Shown here one piece after another: positions 327-21,900 of a DNA stretch of 64,000 bases (the stretch's first letter is position 1; each line of letters begins with the position of its first letter). The notes beneath the pieces were generated by a model that saw nothing but the letters and a program-made list of their open reading frames with translations, searched no databases and was not told the origin of the DNA. This stretch comes from Cyanophora paradoxa CCMP329 (lineage: Eukaryota; Plantae; Glaucophyta). The stretch lies in the NCBI GenBank assembly GCA_004431415.1, contig QPMI01000085.1, positions 62,001-126,000 on the forward strand, given 5' to 3'. The position numbers and the translations under genes are program-made.

Positions 327-2641
327 ATGCCACTCGAAAAGCCCCCGCGGCACTCGCACGGCGGCGCTTTGCTTGGCCCCGCGCGCCATAGCAGGCCGTG
401 GGCCGGCGGCGGCGTCGTGCAGCGGGCGCCTGTACGACCGCCTGCGCCGTTGTGGCATCCCCCTCGTACAGGTTTCAGGCCTCCCTCATCGGGGGGCGGA
501 GCTCAATCAGCGTTCCGCCTCGCTTGCCCCGACGTGCGCGCGTCATCTTTGAAGCAGCCCATTGTGCCGCAGAAGCGCTCGGTGAGCGACCCCGCGCTTT
601 CGTGTGTTGCACTGCAGCTGAGTCCGTGTGCAGCGCGAATCTGAGGTCGCACCGCTTTCATTCTCGAATGCAATGGGGTGAGCTTATGTACACGACTCCT
701 GTGTCCTTCTTGCGATCGACGATCGCTCAGTAACGCAAGCGTGCACGATTCTGCCTTCGGGCCCGCTCTTCCAGCCGGCCCCGACGTGGGGGGCGTCCCT
801 GGGGAAAGAGCATCGTCGTCGACCGCGCTCCGCCGATCGGTCCTGCAGGCGACCCCGAGGCCGTGGGTCTCAGCTCTGAGAACTCCTCCATACGGCCAGT
901 CAATGCACATTCAAGGAGATTCGCGAGACAGCAGTCGGATGCAGATTGGGCTGGACGAGCAAATTCGCTCGGAGAGAGAAATCAGGCGGTGCGTGCTTTG
1001 AAACTTGCTGCCATGTCAGACGCCGATGCGCAACAGGGGGGAGGAGATTGAAGACCTTCTTAGCCAAATGCAGATGAGGACAATGGCCCTGAGCATCAGC
1101 GACAGCCGCATGTCCTCAGCATGCGACGGGATGGCTCGCACATCGAGCAAGCCGGTTCCGCATCGTTTGCAGATTAGGGAGGTGCCCGAAGACACCTATC
1201 GTGGCCCATCAAGCAGCACACCACAGCCTCCAACATACGCAGAAATTGTTTCAGGAGCACCGAGGCCAACAGGGGTGCGGTTGTTATATCTGCTGCTCTC
1301 CGTTCGTTCAAACCCAGCAGCGTTTGCAGACGATGCTGTCTTCACATTCGAGCCAGCCAGTGGTTTATTTAAAGAACGTGGAAGGGCTTCCTGTGTCTCT
1401 ACAAGAGGCACTCGAAGAGGACATTGAGCAACATGTATGTCTTTTCGATTGCACTGTTTGTCCCGTCTCCTGAATTTCTACAGTTGCAAGAGCGGCTAAC
1501 CATGAAAGAGCTTGCCCGTGCTTGGTTCTTCAGAAAGCGCCCCCTTTCAGTGTGCGTTCAATGCGAACCTGTCCAGGCTGCTAGTGTCCCGCCTTTTACT
1601 CTGGTTGCAGGGAAGAGGAAGAGCGTGTCAAGAAGGAGATGCGAGGGGCATCTGAAGCCGTGATAGTCGAGCACAGCTTCCCCATTCTGGGACTCATCGA
1701 GGTCAAAAGGCGGCATCTTCAAACACTAAATGGCACAGCCTGGCTGAACGACGAGATCATCAACTTCTACATGGGCCTGTTGGCTCGCCGAAACACCCAG
1801 GCCAACCCACCGCTTCCTTTGAAGGTAACCCTACATCCGTTTCAACGAGTTTCTTGCCTCACTTTCGTTCTGCCACCAGTGCCACCTTTGGCATTCCCTC
1901 TTCTACACGCGATTCACTCAGCCTTCATATAATTACAAGAATGTGCAGCGCTGGACACGGAACAAGGTGCACATGCCCCAATACATTCCCTCCCGAGTGC
2001 CGCCATTTTCCATACAACTCTCAGGTGGACATCTTCTCAATGGACCGCGTGATCTGCCCAATAAACGTCAACAACACCCACTGGACCTTGGCTGTCATCA
2101 ACATCAAAGAGAAGCAGGTTTTCCTTGCCTCGTTCTTCCACACTCTGGCTTCCGTCACCATGCTGTTGTGCAGTTTGAATACTATGATGGGTATTACGGA
2201 GATGGGGCAGATGCCTTCCGGGTGTGCAGTGTGCAGCTGTCCGCTCTGTCAAAACTTTGACTTGTGTTGCAGAACTTGAGGCGCTGGCTACAAGACGAGC
2301 ACAAGGACAAGAAAAATGCCGATCTGGACCTCTCGCAGTGGCGCAATGTTTCACCTTCATCAAGCAGAGTCCCAAGCCAGGTGCCTTGCCGACCATTTCG
2401 GCCGCCAGTAGCACACTTCTGGGTTGGATGTTCTGGAGGGTTGATCACAGTTTTGCAGACCGATGGGAACAGCTGTGGGGTCTTCGCATGCATGTTCGCG
2501 GACTATGCTTCAACTGGCGATGAGGGCCTCATGGTTGGCGGGGGACCGGATGCTTTCAGCCAGGGTGACATGCAGTACTTCCGGAGGCGGATAGCGCTCG
2601 AAATTATCCAGGCGCAGGCCTTCTCGGAGCGGGCATCATGA
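327..2641 (+). CDS. Ulp1/SENP-family SUMO protease (peptidase C48), multi-exon; start codon uncertain
   Basis: Spliced exons give LQTLNGTAWLNDEIINFYMGLL, NYKNVQRWTRNK|VDIFSMDRVICPINVNNTHWTLAVIN (catalytic His), FEYYD (Asp), VPSQ|TDGNSCGVFACMFADY (Gln/Cys) and FSQGDMQYFRRRIALEI, with stop at 2641. A low-complexity N-terminus can be spliced in frame from the ATG at 327 (intron 582-633 and others). Confidence 0.93.
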
Positions 2642-2650
2642 GCATATTTG

Positions 2651-2710
2651 ATCGTGACATGTGATGTTCGCTAGCTGTTAACTAGCTAACTAGCAGCACA
2701 TCTGTGTCAC
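2651..2710. repeat. Imperfect ~55-bp hairpin motif just after the Ulp1 stop; second copy at 50690-50737
   Basis: atcgtgacatgtgatgttcgctagctgttaactagctaactagcagcacatc aligns with atcttgacacgtgatgtttgctagcttgctgttaactagcagcacatc. Its arms (gtgaca...tgtcac, gatgt..gctag...ctagc..acatc) are self-complementary. Confidence 0.6.
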
Positions 2711-2754
2711 ACGTGAAAGTGAGCTGTGTTGGGTCGAGTGTGGCCTTTGCCTTA

Positions 2755-2909
2755 TTCAAGTCGAAGCTGATATGATTATGTACTCTTTCTAAGCGACGGG
2801 CGCGCCGGACCTCCTACCTACAGCGCTTTAACTGTACCCGTGCTGTTTGGGTGAGAGCGTAACCCGCAGGGACTGGTGCCCTGATAAAGAAAAGGGGATG
2901 GGAGCCTAG
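2755..2909 (-). ncRNA. Candidate Fanzor omega-RNA scaffold
   Basis: Lies directly 3' of the Fanzor stop, the position where TnpB/Fanzor omega-RNAs occur. Three stem-loops are visible: CAGGG-n7-CCCTG (2867-2883), GGGT-n9-ACCC (2849-2865) and TACAG-n8-CTGTA (2819-2836). The 3' boundary is a guess. Confidence 0.4.
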
Positions 2910-3446
2910 CTAGCTACGAGCCGAGCACTGCGGCAGGCACTTCGCGTCCACGCCCGTGCCGTAGCGGATGAAGATGCTCCTGCAAGAGTACGATTACGAT
3001 TGCGATCGGGCGGCGCTCAGCGGCTGGGAGGGGCGAGCCGGCCCTAGGCCTAAACGGAAAATTATGCCGTGGCTAGGCCGTGTCGGGACTAGCCTAGTAG
3101 GCGGGGGGAGCAGCGATTGTGTATAGGCGTGTATAGACACAACACGCACCGCACGGCGCCGCCGTCGCGGTCCGCCCGGAAGCCGCACCCGGGGCGGCAC
3201 TCGAAGACCCTCTTCGAGCCGAGCCCGTAGTTGATCTTGCCGCACACCCCGCACGTCTTCGAGGTCCAGGCCTCGCAGACGAGCTGGAGCGTGCACGGCG
3301 GGTCCTCGTCCTTGGGGTGCCGCCGGACGGCGTGCTGCAGGAGCTGCCGGAACCTGCACAAAATAAGCATCAAGACCGCGTGGCAGAGGGGGTCGAAACG
3401 CAAGACCAACGTACTCGTAGTGGCGGCAGGACGGCAGAATGGAGGC
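2910..3446 (-). pseudogene. Fanzor (eukaryotic TnpB, IS607/Fanzor2-like) C-terminal fragment with two spliceosomal introns
   Basis: Removing GT-AG introns 3414-3354 and 3149-2980 (both phase 2) gives an open frame: SCRHYEFRQLLQHAVRRHPKDEDPPCTLQLVCEAWTSKTCGVCGKINYGLGSKRVFECRPGCGFRADRDGGAVRSIFIRYG..., stop at 2910. This has the HYxFRQxL motif, RuvC-II Glu (EAWTSKTC), a C4 zinc ribbon and RuvC-III Asp (DRD). RuvC-I and the N-terminus are missing. Confidence 0.88.
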
Positions 3447-3457
3447 TGGACGAATTC

Positions 3458-3640
3458 GAAAGTTGGACGAAAGTTGGACGAAAGTTGGACGAAAGTTGGA
3501 CGAAAGTTGGACGAAAGTTGGACGGAAGTTGGACGAAAGTTGGACGAAAGTTGGACGAAAGTTGGACGAAAGTTGGACGAAAGTTGGACGAAAGTTGGAC
3601 GAAAGTTGGACGAAAGTTGGACGAAAGTTGGGCGAAAGTT
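3458..3640. repeat. Tandem array of the 11-bp unit GAAAGTTGGAC, ~16.6 copies
   Basis: Units occur in exact 11-nt register from 3458, with two single-base variants. Confidence 0.97.
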
Positions 3641-3784
3641 TCTGATTCCGATCGTAACCGCAACGCTGATTCCGATCGTAATCGCAACTCTGATTCCGAT
3701 CGTAATCGCAACTCTGATTCCGATCGTAATCGCAACTCTGATTCCGATCGTAATCGCAACTCTGATTCCGATCGTAATCGCAAC
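3641..3784. repeat. Tandem array of the 24-bp unit TCTGATTCCGATCGTAATCGCAAC, 6 copies
   Basis: Directly abuts the 11-bp array. Copies start at 3641, 3665, 3689, 3713, 3737 and 3761. Confidence 0.97.
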
Positions 3785-3981
3785 TCTCAGAGTCTGATTC
3801 CCATCATACCCGGATCAAATCTTATCCGCAGCCTGTACCCCAGCAGGCTTTCCAGGTTTTTTCTTTGCAATTGGCCGGACAGCTGGCCCCTGAGATCCGT
3901 ACGGCTCAGACTGCTGGGTCCAGAACCGCGATATGAGTATGACGAGCCGGTTCAGGTAGCCTAGCTAGCTCAGGCGGCGGC

Positions 3982-6900
3982 ATGGCAAAGAGCAGCCGGG
4001 CCCGGTCAGCGGGCGGCGGCTTGGGCGTACTATGTGCCGCGTTGGTATTACTCTATGTTACAGGTGCGAACTCCGCCGATCGTGGGATCGTGAATCGAGC
4101 TGAAGTTGCCGTGTCCGCAGCATCGAGCGCTGAGTCCAGCCCGGAGCCGGGACCCTCTTTGAGGATCTGCGTGGCTTTCAACGAGGCGTCTCTGGAGTTG
4201 GACGCTGCAGGGGGTGAACAGGGCTCATGGAGAAGCAGCACGAGCGTTCGGGCGCTCGAGCAGCTCGTCCGGGACCTTGCAGCAGCTGGACACAGGATAG
4301 AACTGCTTTTCGTAGCTAAGTCAGCATTTGAAGTACAAGCACCACCAGCCCTGGACGTCGCGTCCATTCCCGGCGTCGAGCTGATCAGCTTGGTTGCCTC
4401 TGCAGCCATGCGGTTGCCGTCCGCAGCAGGCGCGGACGAGTCGCATGCGCTGTACGAGTATCTGCAGCGCGCAGATCCCCGATTCGACGCCGCCTTCGTC
4501 GCGTCAACAGGGGGTCTTGCGTACCAGTCGGTTCTTGCACGCCGCCAGCACCTGGGCCTTGCTGGATGCCCCATCGCGGCGTTCGCTACTGGCGCGTCGC
4601 ATGTGGACTGGCAAGGGGATCAGGACGACCTTGCTGACGGGCGGATCGCGGTGGAAAGGGCCGTGGAATTCGCAGACGGCTTCGTCGCTGCCTCGCACGA
4701 GGCCGCGTCGATCCACGGCCGCCTTCCTGCCATCCGGGCGCTCCTCTCCGATCCCGGTGACCAAGTGCAGGAGCTGCTACTCGCCCTTCGGCGCGCGGAG
4801 GCATCCCGCGCAACGGGGGACGAGTCGGACGAGGCCCTCGAGCGTCTGGCGACGGTCGTGATCATCCCGAGCGTATTCGGAGACTCGGAGGCGATCAGGC
4901 GGGTCGCGCACGCGTGGTCGGTGGCGGCTCCTGGTGCCGATAAGCTCATCATGGGGGCGCCCCGGGATGCTGAAGCGTTTGGCGTGGCGGAAGCCAAGCA
5001 GCGAGGGTGGCGTCACGTCTCTCACCCGTTCTTCTCGGCTTCCGCGGCCCTTAATCAGGCTCTGAACCACGCGCGGGGCCGCTTCCTCCTCTTCCCGGAC
5101 CCGCGGACCTTACCCAAGCCAGGCGGCCTCACGGTGATTGTACGGGCCGCCATCAAGACTGGCTCCAGGGCAGTGTCGGGTCTGATCGAGGCCCGCGGGG
5201 CAGTCGCGGCGCCTGGGGGGCCGCGTTCAGCGCGGACACTGCCGCAGGACTACCTTCTCGACCGCTCCGCCGTGTCGGCTGCCCGTGGCTTCCCCGAGAT
5301 CGCAGCCTCCAGCGAGGGACAAGCAGCGTTGCAGTCGATCCGGGCAGTCGCCGAACGCCTGGCAGGCGACGAGGGCGTCGAGATTGTTCCGCATGTGACA
5401 GCAGAGCTGCCAACAACGGCCCTCCCAGCGTGGTTCTCTCCAGCTAGCGTCGGGCAGAACGGGTGGGATGCCCTTCATCTCGTGCTCAGCGGCAGTACAG
5501 CTCCCTCCTTCGGGCGCCGCCGTAAGATGCTCCAGCTTTCGTCGAGCGCGAACATCCTGTACAGCCTCTCGCTGGCCCCAAAAGCTTACTCGCCCGTAAA
5601 TGAGTCATCCAGTGTGACTCTACAGACCTTCGGGCTCTGGAGGTTCCAGTGGGCCAACTCGAGCCTCTCCTCCCAACAGCTCAACGTCACTGTGAATACA
5701 ACGGGCAAGGGAGATCTTTCCTTGAACGCCTCTTCCGTGGACGAGGCCTTGAGCTCGCACGGCAATCTCACGGGCACCACAATATCGTTTTCTGCTCCCT
5801 CCTCGCTCATTCCGGGGGCAATCGGCGCGATCAAGTTCACAGGCTTTTCAAACCAATTCGGTGAGGGCCTTGATAATTGAACAAATCAAGACGAATCCCA
5901 CTTACTTTTGTACGCAGGGGTAGAACAGGTGACTGTGCGGATCACGCAGGCCAGCGGTGCAAACCCCATCTCGATCTCGTTTACGTTCACGATCCATGCT
6001 GTGAATGGGGCTCCGACTCTGACACCACCGGGGCCCTTCAACACAACCCAAAATGTGCCCGTGACTATTCCAGCGTTCTCTTTCAGCGATCCGGATGCAG
6101 CAGAGAGCCTCAACTCTGATGATCAGTTCCAGCTTAACATTACCGCGTCGCAAGGACTTGTTGCCATCGTCAATGGCGCCACTTGCGACAGCGCCATCTT
6201 CAACTGCACGCTGGCCAGCGAGACATCCTTGTCCCTGAGTGTCGTATTGTCAGGCCCGTGTGCAGGTCTGCAGTACGTACGTGAGCCTCCTCAGAGTCCC
6301 CACTCTTTGGTCTTGCGTGGCATCCTTTCCGTTTTGCGCCAATGTACCCAAGCTGGCAACTCCATCGAGTACACACCGGCCAGGAATTTCCGATCAGACC
6401 TGAGAGGGGATGACTCCCTCATCATTCAAGTCGAGGATCTTGGTGAGTTCATGTCGGTTTCTTCTCGCAATCTCATTCGCCCAACAATTTGCCCATAGGT
6501 AGCAGTGGGGCAACTCGCAACTACATTGGTAACGGAGATGCAACGGGACCTGGGGCGACGTGGTCTACCGTCTACCCGTGGGAGATTCGCAGGCTGGGCT
6601 GGGACATTCTTCCAGCGGGATCAGGACGCTCGGCCCCCGTCAACATATCGCGGGCGTTCGTTGCATCCGACAAGGGTGCATCCCGCTCGCAGACTGTAGA
6701 CCTCTACGCTCGACATGGTACTCCCAGCAGCGTACTTGAGACCCGGCCTGTGATCAGAGTCGGGGAGTACGTGGCATGCACACTCCGGGAAGATACGTTC
6801 TACTTCCGGGTTGAGATCCGCGATGCGGCCAACCACACGATGATGCATTGGGACTCGAGAGAGGCAAACAAAGGGAACTTCAATTCCACAAGCACCGATT

Positions 6901-15900: not shown

Positions 15901-18900
15901 GTGGTCTTTATCGGTTCACATTCACGCCAACTGTGCGTGGCAGAAAATAGCACTTGTAGATTAGCACTCACTCTCATTGCAGGTGGCTGGAGTTTACAAA
16001 ATCTACGTTGCGATGAATAGTCGAAATGCAACAACTGGCCCGCTGACAACAATTGTGTATCCCAAGCGTGCGTCGCCTCCTTAATCTCTAAATATTGCGG
16101 GCTCACTCTCCAGTCGCTCGCAGAGGGCACCACGGAGTTCGATATCTCCAAATGCCAAGCCTGGGGCAGTGTTCTCGACCGTCGCTCCGGGAAGAGGGCC
16201 GAGGTCGCCTCGCCATGGAACATCTATGTCAATGTGTCTGATACATTCTGGAATATCCGGCCCATCGATGTAGCAAGCCCCAACAGCACAGCGACCATCG
16301 CAAGGCTGAAGGCAGTCATGTATCCACTCTCTGATCTTTCAAAAACTCCACGCCCTGACAATCCCACAAATATTGAGTGTACGTACAGTCGACTCTGCAA
16401 GCAAACGCCACCATGATTGCTAATAGCGAAGTGCAGATGACTGGAGCACAGCTTACTATCTGGTCAACTTTTACGAAGAGCGGCGAGGCTTCTACCTGAT
16501 TGACGTAACTCTGGATGGGCAGCCCCTCGTCGGCTCACCATACACGGTTGAAGTTGTGCCCCCACGGACGAGCGCATTCGCCACAACTACGATTGATCCC
16601 GCTGCTGCGGCGACTGCTGAGACTGCGCGGCCGAGAGCGCCCCCATCTTACCTGGTGGCTGGTCGCACGGAATCGATCATTGTCGTTCCGCGGGATATTT
16701 TCTTAAATCCCACTACAAATGTGACAGACGAGAATGCGCTCTCCGACATTGAGAAATCAGATCGAACTGGTGCGGCTCTTGCTCTCCCCGGTGTCGGTGT
16801 CGAGTTCAGCCTGTGGATCGAGATTCGTGACCGAGGAGGGCAAGAGGCCAGCAAGAAGCGCTGGCGGTGGACCCCAGCTGTTCTTTGGGATGTGCCGCAA
16901 TCCGGCGGAACGCTCACAGGCAACCAGCGAATGTACAACATGAGCTACACCGTTGAGGATGCCGGAGAGTATGGTATATATGGTGTTGCCAACATTACAT
17001 GTCCGCAAATCAGAACATTGCTGCAGATTTACGCATCTTCATGCGAATCAAGGGTGGTGATCCAGTGGTCATTTGCCTTCACATTCCAGGCGTGAATGAC
17101 TGCTCCTACAAGGTCAGAAGAGGAAGTCCGTGGCCAACAGCAAACAGTGCGCTCAAGATCACTGTCATTCCAGGTAAGGAAAAGGAAACATCCAGGTTTA
17201 TTGTGCCATGCAGCGCCTTGGTCGAACTAATGTTGGTTTTCCAGACTTTCCCGATGGCTCCAAGTCGCTTTTGCTCTCACCTGTGCCGACACGTGTTGTT
17301 GCTGGTGACTTCGTCGCGTTCTCTGTCTCGGCCATCGATGCCTACGGGAATGTTATCCGCTGGGGAGATTTCGACCCAGAGAATGCGAACAAGGTCATCC
17401 GCCTTCTATGTTCGTTGTACTCTGCCGATATTGACATTCTTTGCAGACCCAAGACGCAAATGGGGCACTCATTCCACGCTGGTACACCTCCAACAACCGC
17501 ACGGACCCAACTTTCTTCTGGGCTGCAGCACGGCGCGACGCCCCTGACTTCTTCGGGAATGATGTTCTTGTCACTGCTGGTACTTGGGGCCAGAATGTCT
17601 TTGACTGGCGGAACGGAACTTACACATGTGCGTTAGAGCCGTTAGAGAGGATTAGAAAGTGGCACGGATTGACCTTCCGCACTCTGCGCAGTGCGCATTA
17701 ACGCCACGAGAGCTGGGATGTACACAGTAAATGTCGGGCGTGGCTCCGCAATCCGAGGTGGAGCGACCGTGCAGGGCAGCGGCTTCCGCATCAAGGTCGA
17801 GCCTGGACCGATGAGTCATCTTGGAACTGTCATGCTTGGTGATGGCGATCCCGAAAAGCCATTCTACTTTGGTAACGGGTGCGTCTGGATCCACTCGTCC
17901 TCAAGCAATGACATTTCCAACACGTGCCAATCTTAGGTTGACGACGCTCTGCAACGCCCAGTACCTGGGGATTGACGACGACGCATACTTCACCATCTTT
18001 GGTCGCGATCGCTTCGAGAACGATGTTGAAACAACAAACGACGCCCAGAATCTGCGTGTAAACATTGAATTCAACAATACGATCATCTCGTCAAATGTCA
18101 CCAACGGAACCGTCCCTGGACGATACATTGCGCGATACACGCCACAGACGAAAGGTCGCTACCGGATCACGACCTTCCACAATGGTTCTGCAATCCTCCC
18201 GGGTTCCGTTACAGCTTGCGTTTGGTTTCGTCCGTCTCTTTTTTGTATTTATTTCTAAAGCTGAGCACTCATCAGCAACACAGAGAATGCACCTAGCATG
18301 AAGTTGGCCAAGCTCAGTGACTCGGCCTTCAATTTGACGATGTTCGTGCTCTTGCGCTGCCCATCTTTCAAATTTCATGTTCTTCCTGCGCAGCATCTTC
18401 AGCAACGACACCGATTTGGCGAGAAGACAATATCCAGAGCTCCCTGATATCTTCGATTGCAATGTTGTGCTCGAAGAGGCCTCAGTGGCCACTCTGGGAC
18501 GAGGGGCGCAGTGTTCCTGGCTCTCGCGCCGCGCGTTGGACATTTCGATTGGTGGACAAGCCAATTTCACTGTCCTCAAGGTTAATGCGAACGGCACGGA
18601 GGGAAGCACACAGACAACGGAGCTGGTCCTGAAAGAAAAAGTCATTTACGGCAATTATGTGCGTAGTTGGCGTGATACGTGCTTGACATGGCTGATCAAA
18701 TCGGCAGAGAGCTTCGGAGTATGCTGCCGGCAGTTCCCGAATTCTGTCTCCTGACAATCCCCCGCCTATCCTTCTGGGCGTCGGGGTGCTGCCTCTTTCG
18801 TGTTGCTATCTGACCGAAAGTTGACAATAGCGACACGCAGGCCCCGCGGAGTATCGGAGCTTGTGCCGGTGCACCGCTCACATCGTTTGTCAATCCGGAG

Positions 18901-21900
18901 GCTGCCCTCAGCCGCGCGTGGACAAGCATCACGTGGACACTGAAGGCGGTGGAGTCTCTCCCTCTCAACGCCAGTAGGAAGACGAAGCAGCACGAGGATT
19001 CGGAGATAAGGATAGGAAGGCTATTTGCGGAGAAGAGTGCAGTCGCAGCAACCGATTTCGAGATTCCATCGAGTCTGCTAGCCGAGAATGCCCGGTACAG
19101 CATATCCGTGCGCTATGAAAACTTCATCGGAAAGTACAGGGAAGAGCCAGCAATCGTGCGGCGCTTGTGTGTCACTCGTGGAGTCTGACATCGATCTGAT
19201 CGCCCGTGTTCCTGAGCAGATGACGAAGACCGACGAGCTGCTGCCGGAAGTGCGCATCCTTGACCCTCTGCAGATTGTAAAACGCAGTGAGGGCGTGAGG
19301 ATCGTAGCCGATGTCAACGGCACTTCGTGTCCCACAAACGTCACCAGCATCCCGTTCGTCTCTTGCTATCGATTCCACAAGGAATCAGCCACCTGACTTA
19401 AGGCTGCAGGACGATTCTGTCCAGGTGGGAATTGCGGTCGGCAACCTACTCCAACGGCGACCACATGCTTGTCAGCGAGTACAGCAACAACGCGACCGCG
19501 AATGCGAGGGAGCAGCTGGCTCCCCTTCTGGCCGTTCTGGCTAAGAAGAGCGGCGCCCTGTCGCCATCGCTTTTCATCCCAGCGCGTGTTCTAGGGCCCG
19601 GTGCAAAGTACGAATTCCGCCTGAATGTTACCGTGATCCGGGCGGGTGGCAACTTCTCTGCGGAGGCGTTCTCAAAAATCGAGGTGACGACGTCAAACCT
19701 GATGGTGAAGGTCGCGGGCGGCGACAAGTCCGTCTCTGCCTCCCAGCCCTTCGTGATGCAGGCCATTCCACTGGACCCCGATGACGATGTGTCAGCGACG
19801 AGTTACGAGGGGGCGATTTTTACATGGTCGTGTCGCACTATCCGTTTCGTCCAGGACCGGAACATTCTTCTCAACCAGAACTCTACCGACGTCATTGTGC
19901 CGGAAGTGGTCGAGAACGTGTGCCGTGGGCGGGATGGCAATCCTGCGCCGCAGTCGACGCGGTACGGCAACGATACACTCGAGTTCCCCAAGAATTACTT
20001 CTTCCCGAGCAAGGAGAACGAGGTGTTGGAGTTCACCGTCAGCATGACGAAGACGAGCTCCTACTGGCGCCTCGCCGCCCGCAGTCCCGCTACTGCCACG
20101 GCTCGCGTTCAGATTCTCCCTGGGGACGCCCCCACGATCCAGATCTTGGTGGAGAGCCCCGTCCAGGCGCAGGCCTCGGGCATTATTCGTGCCGCCGATC
20201 GCCTCGTCGTACGCAACGCCGCTGGCTCCCTGTCTGCCGACTCCCCTTACGGTCTCTGCAGCTGCTGGCCTACGTGGAGCAGTTCACTGGCACGCGCACG
20301 TACCGTTGGAACTGCACCGTGAACGGCAACCATTTTGATCTCAGCAGCGTGTGCCCCGGCCCGCAGGCCATGTCGTTAGCCCGCCTCACCAAGCTGCAGA
20401 TCGCGCTCAACGGGGCGACGACGGACTCCTACCTGACGATTGAGCCAAACAAGCTGCTGCGCGGGTTCACATACCGCTTCCGCGCCGAGGTTACCGACGA
20501 CAACGCCAACCCGGGTCCGCACTAGCCGCCCCGTCTCCCCTCTGATTTGCCAATTATGCTTTGCCAGCGTATTCGGAGCGGGAGATCGAGATCAACACGC
20601 CGGCGCGCTTCTGCAACATCTTTTCCTCGCCGATGTCGGGCGTCGCTCTACAGACAACGTTCTTTTTTGACGTCCGCGACTGTGTCACCAAGAGCAAGCT
20701 CCGGGTCCGCTGCGCACGGACCCGCGCCCCGCCTGGCGGCTGAAGCCCCCACGCGCAGTACCGCTTCCGTGCTAACTACGACCCGAGCAACGTTGGGAGC
20801 GCGACCGAGACCCTCGGCCTGGGCGACAACTCCGCCATCCTGCCGTGCGCCGTGCAGGGCGCGAGCCGCTGCCGCGGGGGCCGAGTGTTGGGCACAGGTT
20901 CAAAGCGAGCGCGTTGGAGCCGGGCAAGCAGCAGTTGGGCGATATTTACCCGGTCAATATTACCGCCATCGTCTTGGACGACCTGGTACGCCGCCGTCCG
21001 CCTGTCCAGTGAGAGGGCTGCTGTAACGGAGCGTGCAGGACGACGAGGCAAACTTCACGTTGCGCATCTCGGTGGCACCGACGGCGACCTTCAACATCAC
21101 GGACGTCGAGAAGTACGTCGCGATGATCGGCATCACTCAGCTCACCTCCGGGGACCCGGGCACTGTCGTACAGGTGCGGCCGCTGCCGCCCCGCCGGCCC
21201 CGGGCGTGACGCGGCGCAGATGATCTCCGTCGTCGTGGGCGTGCTGAACGACGCCCTCGACGCCTCGACGCCCTCAAATCTGGGATCGGTCGTGGAGCGG
21301 GAGGAGATCCGAGAGGACGTGATGAAGGCGCTGGAGTCTGCGATCGACGCGATCGTGGGAGACAACTTCGCTGTCACGCCTGCCTTCATGGAGCGGCAGG
21401 GCGCCGTCGTGACGGCGATCGTGAACAAGACGGAGGAGGTGACGCCTACGGCGGCATATGCCGGCATCCGCATCCTCGATAAGCTCGTCAAATCGCCCGC
21501 CATCGACGTCAACGTTGAGGCCGGGATCTCCTTCCTCCACGCCCTCTCTGCCCTCCTCAACGTCACCGACACCGCCCGCAAGAACCCCTCCAACAGCACA
21601 ATCGTCAAGGTCTGCCGGGCCGTCTTGCATCGCCCTCCACCCCACCCCACCCCCACCCCCACCCCCACCGGCCCCCCACCCTCACCTCACACACACACAC
21701 AACGATGATGTTCCACGGCGCAGGCAACCGACGTCGGGGGGCTGAATGAATTTGTGAAAGGAGGCCAACAGAGTCTCCACCGTGTCGTCACCGTTATCAC
21801 GGGCAAGATAGCAGTCTCGATGCCTCCCAATGGACCCCCGATCACAGTCCGTCCTGCCGTATTTTTTCGCCGCATTCGCCTTTTCACCACCATCGCCACA

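Follow-up and report, generated by a model that had tools for sequence, protein, structure and literature searches.

The locus at 2910-3429 on the minus strand of the window, by which we mean the whole 64-kb stretch of Cyanophora paradoxa DNA analysed here, is what remains of a Fanzor2 gene, namely its final ~8% in broken form; Fanzor2 is an RNA-guided DNA-cutting enzyme. As a functional Fanzor2 member it fails; the locus is a fragment of a member. We read it as a dead, non-autonomous, deleted copy of a high-copy C. paradoxa Fanzor2 transposon, and we give this reading a probability of roughly 0.8. The copy itself is an ordinary dead tail, one of many. What is new here is the probable target-site duplication (TSD) and the 1.15-kb insert with an array module that it encloses. 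An earlier, sequence-only reading of this DNA had missed that larger insert.

The fragment and its splice sites

The fragment consists of three coding pieces, all on the minus strand. A remnant of the third-last Fanzor exon (3415-3429), coding for CRHY and a split Glu codon, was placed by an identical 15-nt stretch in a spliced contig of a sister copy and by the paralogous proteins. Intron 1 (3354-3414, 61 nt), exon 2 (3150-3353), intron 2 (2980-3149, 170 nt) and the last exon (2910-2979) follow. Both introns are of the GT-AG type and interrupt a codon after its second base (phase 2), so that the three pieces share one frame. Exon 2 reads FRQLL..CEAWTSKTC..CGVC..CRPGC..DRDGGAV and carries the shifted RuvC-II Glu, a zinc ribbon and the RuvC-III Asp. 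Its third positions are G or C in 67 of 67 codons, which has a probability of about 1e-10 at the GC3 of the neighbouring gene (0.71). To eight paralog models, exon 2 is identical at 62-66 of the 67 residues. A Val codon at ~3153 is private to this copy. The sequence-only reading had called the same introns (3414-3354 and 3149-2980) and the same motifs (HYEFRQLL, the RuvC-II Glu, the zinc ribbon and the RuvC-III Asp in one frame), and the splice sites, the PF07282 profile and the paralog proteins bear it out.

Homology searches were run exon by exon, not on the joined peptide. Searched alone, exon 2 passed the Pfam cut-off for the TnpB zinc ribbon PF07282 (35.5 bits vs 26.3), matched the NCBIfam TnpB models weakly, and found the mimivirus Fanzor2 9b0l as its best PDB match (E 3.5e-5). 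The C1_2 zinc domain, tried as a rival family for exon 2, was rejected, being below its cut-off. Exon 3 searched alone gave no matches, and exon 1 was too short to search. The alignment with 9b0l places the CEAWTSKTC Glu opposite E467 of the mimivirus ApmFz2, the shifted RuvC-II Glu, which is essential according to Jiang et al. (PMC10530073). This Glu (E-AWTSKT-C) precedes the zinc finger by six residues, and a Glu six residues ahead of the zinc finger is a Fanzor signature (Yoon et al., 10.1101/2023.08.09.552727). Profile, PDB and homolog evidence together support the assignment to a Fanzor2/IS607-TnpB-type C-terminus, as had been proposed. There was no second Fanzor copy within the 64-kb window.

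The genomic setting is eukaryotic, as indicated by the EukProt C. paradoxa models and by the spliced neighbour gene. The locus had been thought hidden from the list of open reading frames. In fact, the open reading frame 3089-3409 holds exon 2, and the locus already stands in the public annotation as tig00000342_g24215 (P0158), a 96-aa model that includes exons 2 and 3 exactly and places its start ATG inside intron 1.

Comparing read contigs with the window, we find intron 2 precisely absent from contigs of three presumed RNA ('RNA-guess') runs (X1, X2 and X5) and retained in a DNA-like run (X16). In the neighbouring Ulp1/SENP protease gene, the RNA-guess contigs likewise leave out five introns, of which the DNA-like run skips none. 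The junction of intron 1 appears as a loose end: a sister contig joins 3353 to 15 letters equal to 3415-3429 and then continues with RQALD. Annotated paralogs read ..DCRHYEFRQL.. across the same position. Splicing at both predicted introns is seen in transcript-like contigs of sister copies. The sister alleles that these contigs carry differ by one mismatch in exon 2 and lack the 8-nt insertion of exon 3. The contigs confirm the splice sites at the level of the family and do not show transcription of this copy.

The Fanzor homology stops at 3429, where the paralogs go on with RQALD and the window with ASILPS, and the match to DNA contigs ends at the same position. The extent of 2910-3446 assigned to Fanzor before is therefore too long, 3430-3446 being other DNA. 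At the start of the non-Fanzor spacer (3430-3456, minus strand), paralog transcript and DNA contigs part from the sequence of the window; at other places, the spacer continues into different DNA. The breakpoint 3429/3430 has the same 5-nt repeat on either side (GGCAG in plus-strand letters). What the copy retains corresponds to residues 997-1087 of the full-length paralog P0157, about 91 of 1,087 (~8%). RuvC-I (including its DPG), WED, REC and the bridge helix are missing. Nor is the frame intact, as had been supposed. Comparison with paralogs and contigs places an 8-nt insertion at ~2925-2932 in the last exon. It turns the family ending KRLLGS* into KCLPQCSARS* and puts the stop codon at 2910-2912, the family stop codon being 2914-2916. 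The frameshift falls downstream of the catalytic motifs. Without RuvC-I, WED, REC or the bridge helix, this copy cannot encode a working enzyme, and we infer that it is dead as a nuclease.

The Cyanophora family and its full-length member

The closest proteins are C. paradoxa models of EukProt. They number 14, spread over 11 contigs, and most are C-terminal pieces whose starts differ. One of them, P0157 (tig00000342_g24202), is a spliced, full-length sister of 1,087 aa on the same contig, outside this window. A full-length relative elsewhere in the genome had been anticipated, and P0157 is one, with all three catalytic acids. It carries D613 in DPG, E1028 and D1064, each in an invariant column of a 78-sequence alignment, and Pro971 at the canonical Glu site. 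Over exon 2, it is identical to this copy at 65 of 67 residues.

The predicted fold of P0157 has Fanzor2 9b0l as its best match (Z 17.2, rmsd 4.3, 368 aligned), a support that is only partly independent, as Fanzor2-like homologs went into the building of the model. On the mimivirus Fanzor2, the homolog profile reaches 278.6 bits, vs 135 for the next entry. By sequence, 9b0l ranks first for both exon 2 and P0157; the Fanzor1 structures SpuFz, PpFz and GtFz are not among the sequence matches and rank 15 or lower by fold against P0157. By this ranking of sequence and predicted fold, the family appears nearer to Fanzor2/IS607 TnpB than to Fanzor1. Searches of viral contigs found nothing, and metagenomes gave distant matches only. 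A length-limited homolog search with residues 560-1087 of P0157 had no matches.

The RuvC-III motif (3152-3170, minus strand; P0001, P0152-P0157) reads DRDGGAARS/G in most family models. Among 131 outside homologs, Asn stands at position +2 from the catalytic Asp in 94 and at +6 in 126, and both are absent in only 4. Given this motif, cutting by the full-length enzyme may be altered or weak. P0157 also has an uncharacterised N-terminal extension of 330 aa. Between RuvC-I and the bridge helix it has a basic, low-complexity insert of ~250 aa (~680-927), which may in part be a gene-model artefact. The enzyme worth testing is P0157, not the present copy.

A second Cyanophora Fanzor2 family is represented by P0064 (tig00021617_g22932, 1839 aa), a fusion that adds a USP peptidase and a CW zinc finger to the Fanzor2 and has the canonical RuvC-III DRDVNGARN. 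In the public model P0159 (tig00020614_g12213), a Fanzor tail is attached to the host gene AATF/Che-1; this fusion is probably a prediction artefact at another insertion. Among outside Fanzor2-like homologs, P0020 lies head to head with the gag-pol of a Ty3-type LTR retrotransposon (L017:1-6509).

The insert and its origin

The 12-mer at 2769-2780 recurs on the same strand at 3930-3941 with one mismatch (both on the minus strand), and this is its only other match in the 64-kb window. The chance expectation is 0.04 per window, and none of 217 control stretches matched equally well. The pair is a probable TSD, and it bounds an insert of 1,149 bp (2781-3929) that starts 140 nt past the SENP stop and ends 52 nt short of the ATG at 3982. 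A second direct repeat, 2900-2915/3955-3970, does not qualify as a TSD, since its right-hand member falls within the conserved element, where the stop codon is.

Inside the TSD pair, the left side of the insert is a unique part of 142 nt (3788-3929, minus strand), a candidate left end or captured DNA. Two tandem arrays detected by TRF follow, one with 6.1 copies of a 24-nt unit (3641-3787) and one with 16.7 copies of an 11-nt unit (3457-3640). After the spacer and the Fanzor fragment comes a high-copy 3' tail (2783-2909, minus strand) up to the right end of the element at ~2783, as delimited by contig depth and by loose ends at 2777-2804. An omegaRNA would be expected in this tail. The right TSD copy lies 2 nt past this family right end.

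Mapping of read contigs covered 1700-3475. In the DNA-like run, the single-copy flank has a summed contig depth of ~44, against hundreds at exon 1, as many as ~2,000 in exon 2 and 16,000-21,000 at 2780-2900; these sums are no copy number but mark a high-copy right end. Farther right, all runs show about twice the contig depth at 2600-2719, and the DNA-like run falls almost to zero at 2720-2779, which may reflect a short repeat or an effect of filtering.

The arrays adjoin Fanzor tails at other loci as well, in the same orientation and with different breakpoints. In model P0002, on another contig, the translation of the 24-nt array stands directly ahead of the VCEAW of a truncated Fanzor. A DNA-like contig (X16) joins the end of the 11-nt array (3447) to intron 2 (3006), probably at another locus. 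When inverted, the 24-nt unit is similar to a motif close to the acceptor end of intron 2 (14 of 16 positions; 8 of 1000 shuffles were as good), a likeness that a subterminal repeat might show.

A SENP/Ulp1 transcript contig extends 170 nt past the stop (2641-2812, plus strand). Because this contig enters the right end of the element, the insert probably lies within the SENP/Ulp1 3' UTR, antisense to the Fanzor remnant. On the other side, the gene starting at ATG 3982 has a signal-peptide-like start and a weak glycosyltransferase 2 match. If the TSD is real, the insert may have displaced the promoter of this gene or may now supply it.

The deleted-transposon reading orders these observations as follows. 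A spliced parent gene like P0157 would encode a Fanzor2-fold RNA-guided nuclease. A shortened derivative of it would have been pasted as a single unit of 1,149 bp (2781-3929), making the 12-bp target duplication. This unit would comprise the left module with the two arrays and, from the deletion junction 3429/3430 on, the final 2.1 exons, the introns between them and the conserved right end. The introns were kept, and therefore the unit most likely moved as DNA; the transposase would have been supplied in trans, and the 8-nt frameshift gained later or concurrently. The left module would be the element's own left part. The reading is favoured by the Fanzor2 homology, the many C-terminal pieces among the family models, the complete triad and Fanzor2 fold of P0157, the depth climbing to the right end, the sister junctions, the joints of arrays and tails at varied breakpoints, the TSD, and the likeness to Chlamydomonas Fanzor copies described below. 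Against it count the single TSD mismatch, the 2-nt offset from the family's right end, and the possibility that this copy is transcribed. We found no transposase for the element and no terminal inverted repeat of the insert, which also weigh against this reading.

Could the tail 2783-3429 simply be 5'-truncated, with the arrays captured or separately inserted? One-ended rolling-circle copying or LINE reverse transcription of unspliced RNA would produce such a tail. The breakpoints do differ among copies, the right end is over-represented, and Chlamydomonas Fanzor1/Helitron2 copies have variable 7-19-bp TSDs and captured 5' segments (PMC3627910). However, at two other breakpoints (P0002; the X16 joint 3006-3447) arrays again stand beside equally oriented tails, which would not be expected of random capture. 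There is also no poly(A) at the right end and no TTTT ahead of the left TSD. We consider this explanation unlikely.

A more far-reaching proposal concerns the whole family, and we put it forward only as a long shot. The family would be a spliced Fanzor2 in an unclassified, non-IS607 transposon with subterminal arrays, whose ~12-bp TSDs come from staggered, Fanzor-assisted cuts. Deleted copies, including this one, would supply right-end guides to a full-length enzyme with altered RuvC-III.

We find it more improbable still that the copy is a functional guide cassette, in which the tail would give an omegaRNA guided by the flanking target site and used in trans by a full-length Fanzor2. No other part of the element is as conserved or as abundant as the right end, RNA-guess runs included, and it is with this end that the guide RNAs of Fanzors overlap (PMC10530073); P0157 would be a catalytically complete partner. 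Yet the tail folds no better than shuffles (z +0.94 and -0.13) and has no Rfam match, the spliced contigs come from sister alleles lacking the 8-nt insertion of this copy, and transposition alone predicts a right-end excess. Hardly credible is a domesticated mini-protein, the 96-aa zinc-ribbon product g24215 started from the ATG within intron 1: the public model P0158 and two paralog models do use this intronic ATG, but it sits in an intron spliced out of sister transcripts, exon 2 is 97% identical to the parent (a sign of youth rather than selection), the frameshift is private, and the RNA- and DNA-binding lobes are absent.

Comparison with known Fanzor elements

A full-text literature search found no paper with both 'Fanzor' and 'Cyanophora'; intron-containing Fanzors as such have already been published (PMC10530073). 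With the IS607-derived mimivirus Fanzor2 (ApmFz2/ApmFNuc, L79, 9b0l), the Cyanophora family has in common the shifted Glu, the zinc ribbon and, in the paralog, DPG. In contrast to it, the Cyanophora family is nuclear and spliced, and its parent has about double the length, being extended at the N-terminus and carrying the ~250-aa insert after RuvC-I. In RuvC-III, DRDGGAARS/G takes the place of DRDxNxARN. A serine recombinase was not observed, and the present copy is a TSD-flanked fragment. An IS607 element has a serine-recombinase TnpA upstream and makes no TSD; the Cyanophora insert agrees on neither count, no such TnpA being present within it. Among the homologs, P0167 follows an IS607 TnpA, and four others examined show none.

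The Fanzor2* elements of Chloropicon primus and Mya arenaria are non-IS607 and have terminal inverted repeats (TIRs) and 4-5-bp TSDs (Yoon et al., 10.1101/2023.08.09.552727). Like them, the Cyanophora element is a non-autonomous, TSD-producing eukaryotic element, other than IS607, that carries a Fanzor2. Unlike them, it has a 12-bp TSD and no TIR, with a weak subterminal inverted motif only.

CRe-1/2/3 of Chlamydomonas are non-autonomous Helitron2 elements with Fanzor1 (Bao and Jurka 2013, PMC3627910). They are over-abundant at the 3' end, truncated at the 5' end and internally deleted, and they have 7-19-bp TSDs as well as additional 5' sequence (PMC3627910); their Fanzor contains introns (PMC10530073). 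The Cyanophora copy is likewise an algal, intron-bearing Fanzor with an intact 3' end, a truncated 5' end, an internal deletion, a long TSD and extra 5' DNA, and it shares with the CRe-type Helitron2 the variable 7-19-bp TSD range and the 3' over-abundance. The CRe elements carry Fanzor1 and insert after TTTT, whereas the Cyanophora cargo is Fanzor2, its left TSD is preceded by CTCGT, and the locus is without recognised Helitron2 ends.

We do not assign the Cyanophora family to IS607, Fanzor2* or Helitron2, because for each of them a defining feature is absent. The locus itself is transposon debris, useful as a marker of a young Fanzor2 family in a glaucophyte. Its insertion signature, a 12-bp TSD with an array-bearing left module, bears on the long, variable TSDs of algal Fanzor elements, the mechanism of which was called unknown by Craig 2023 (PMC10288648).
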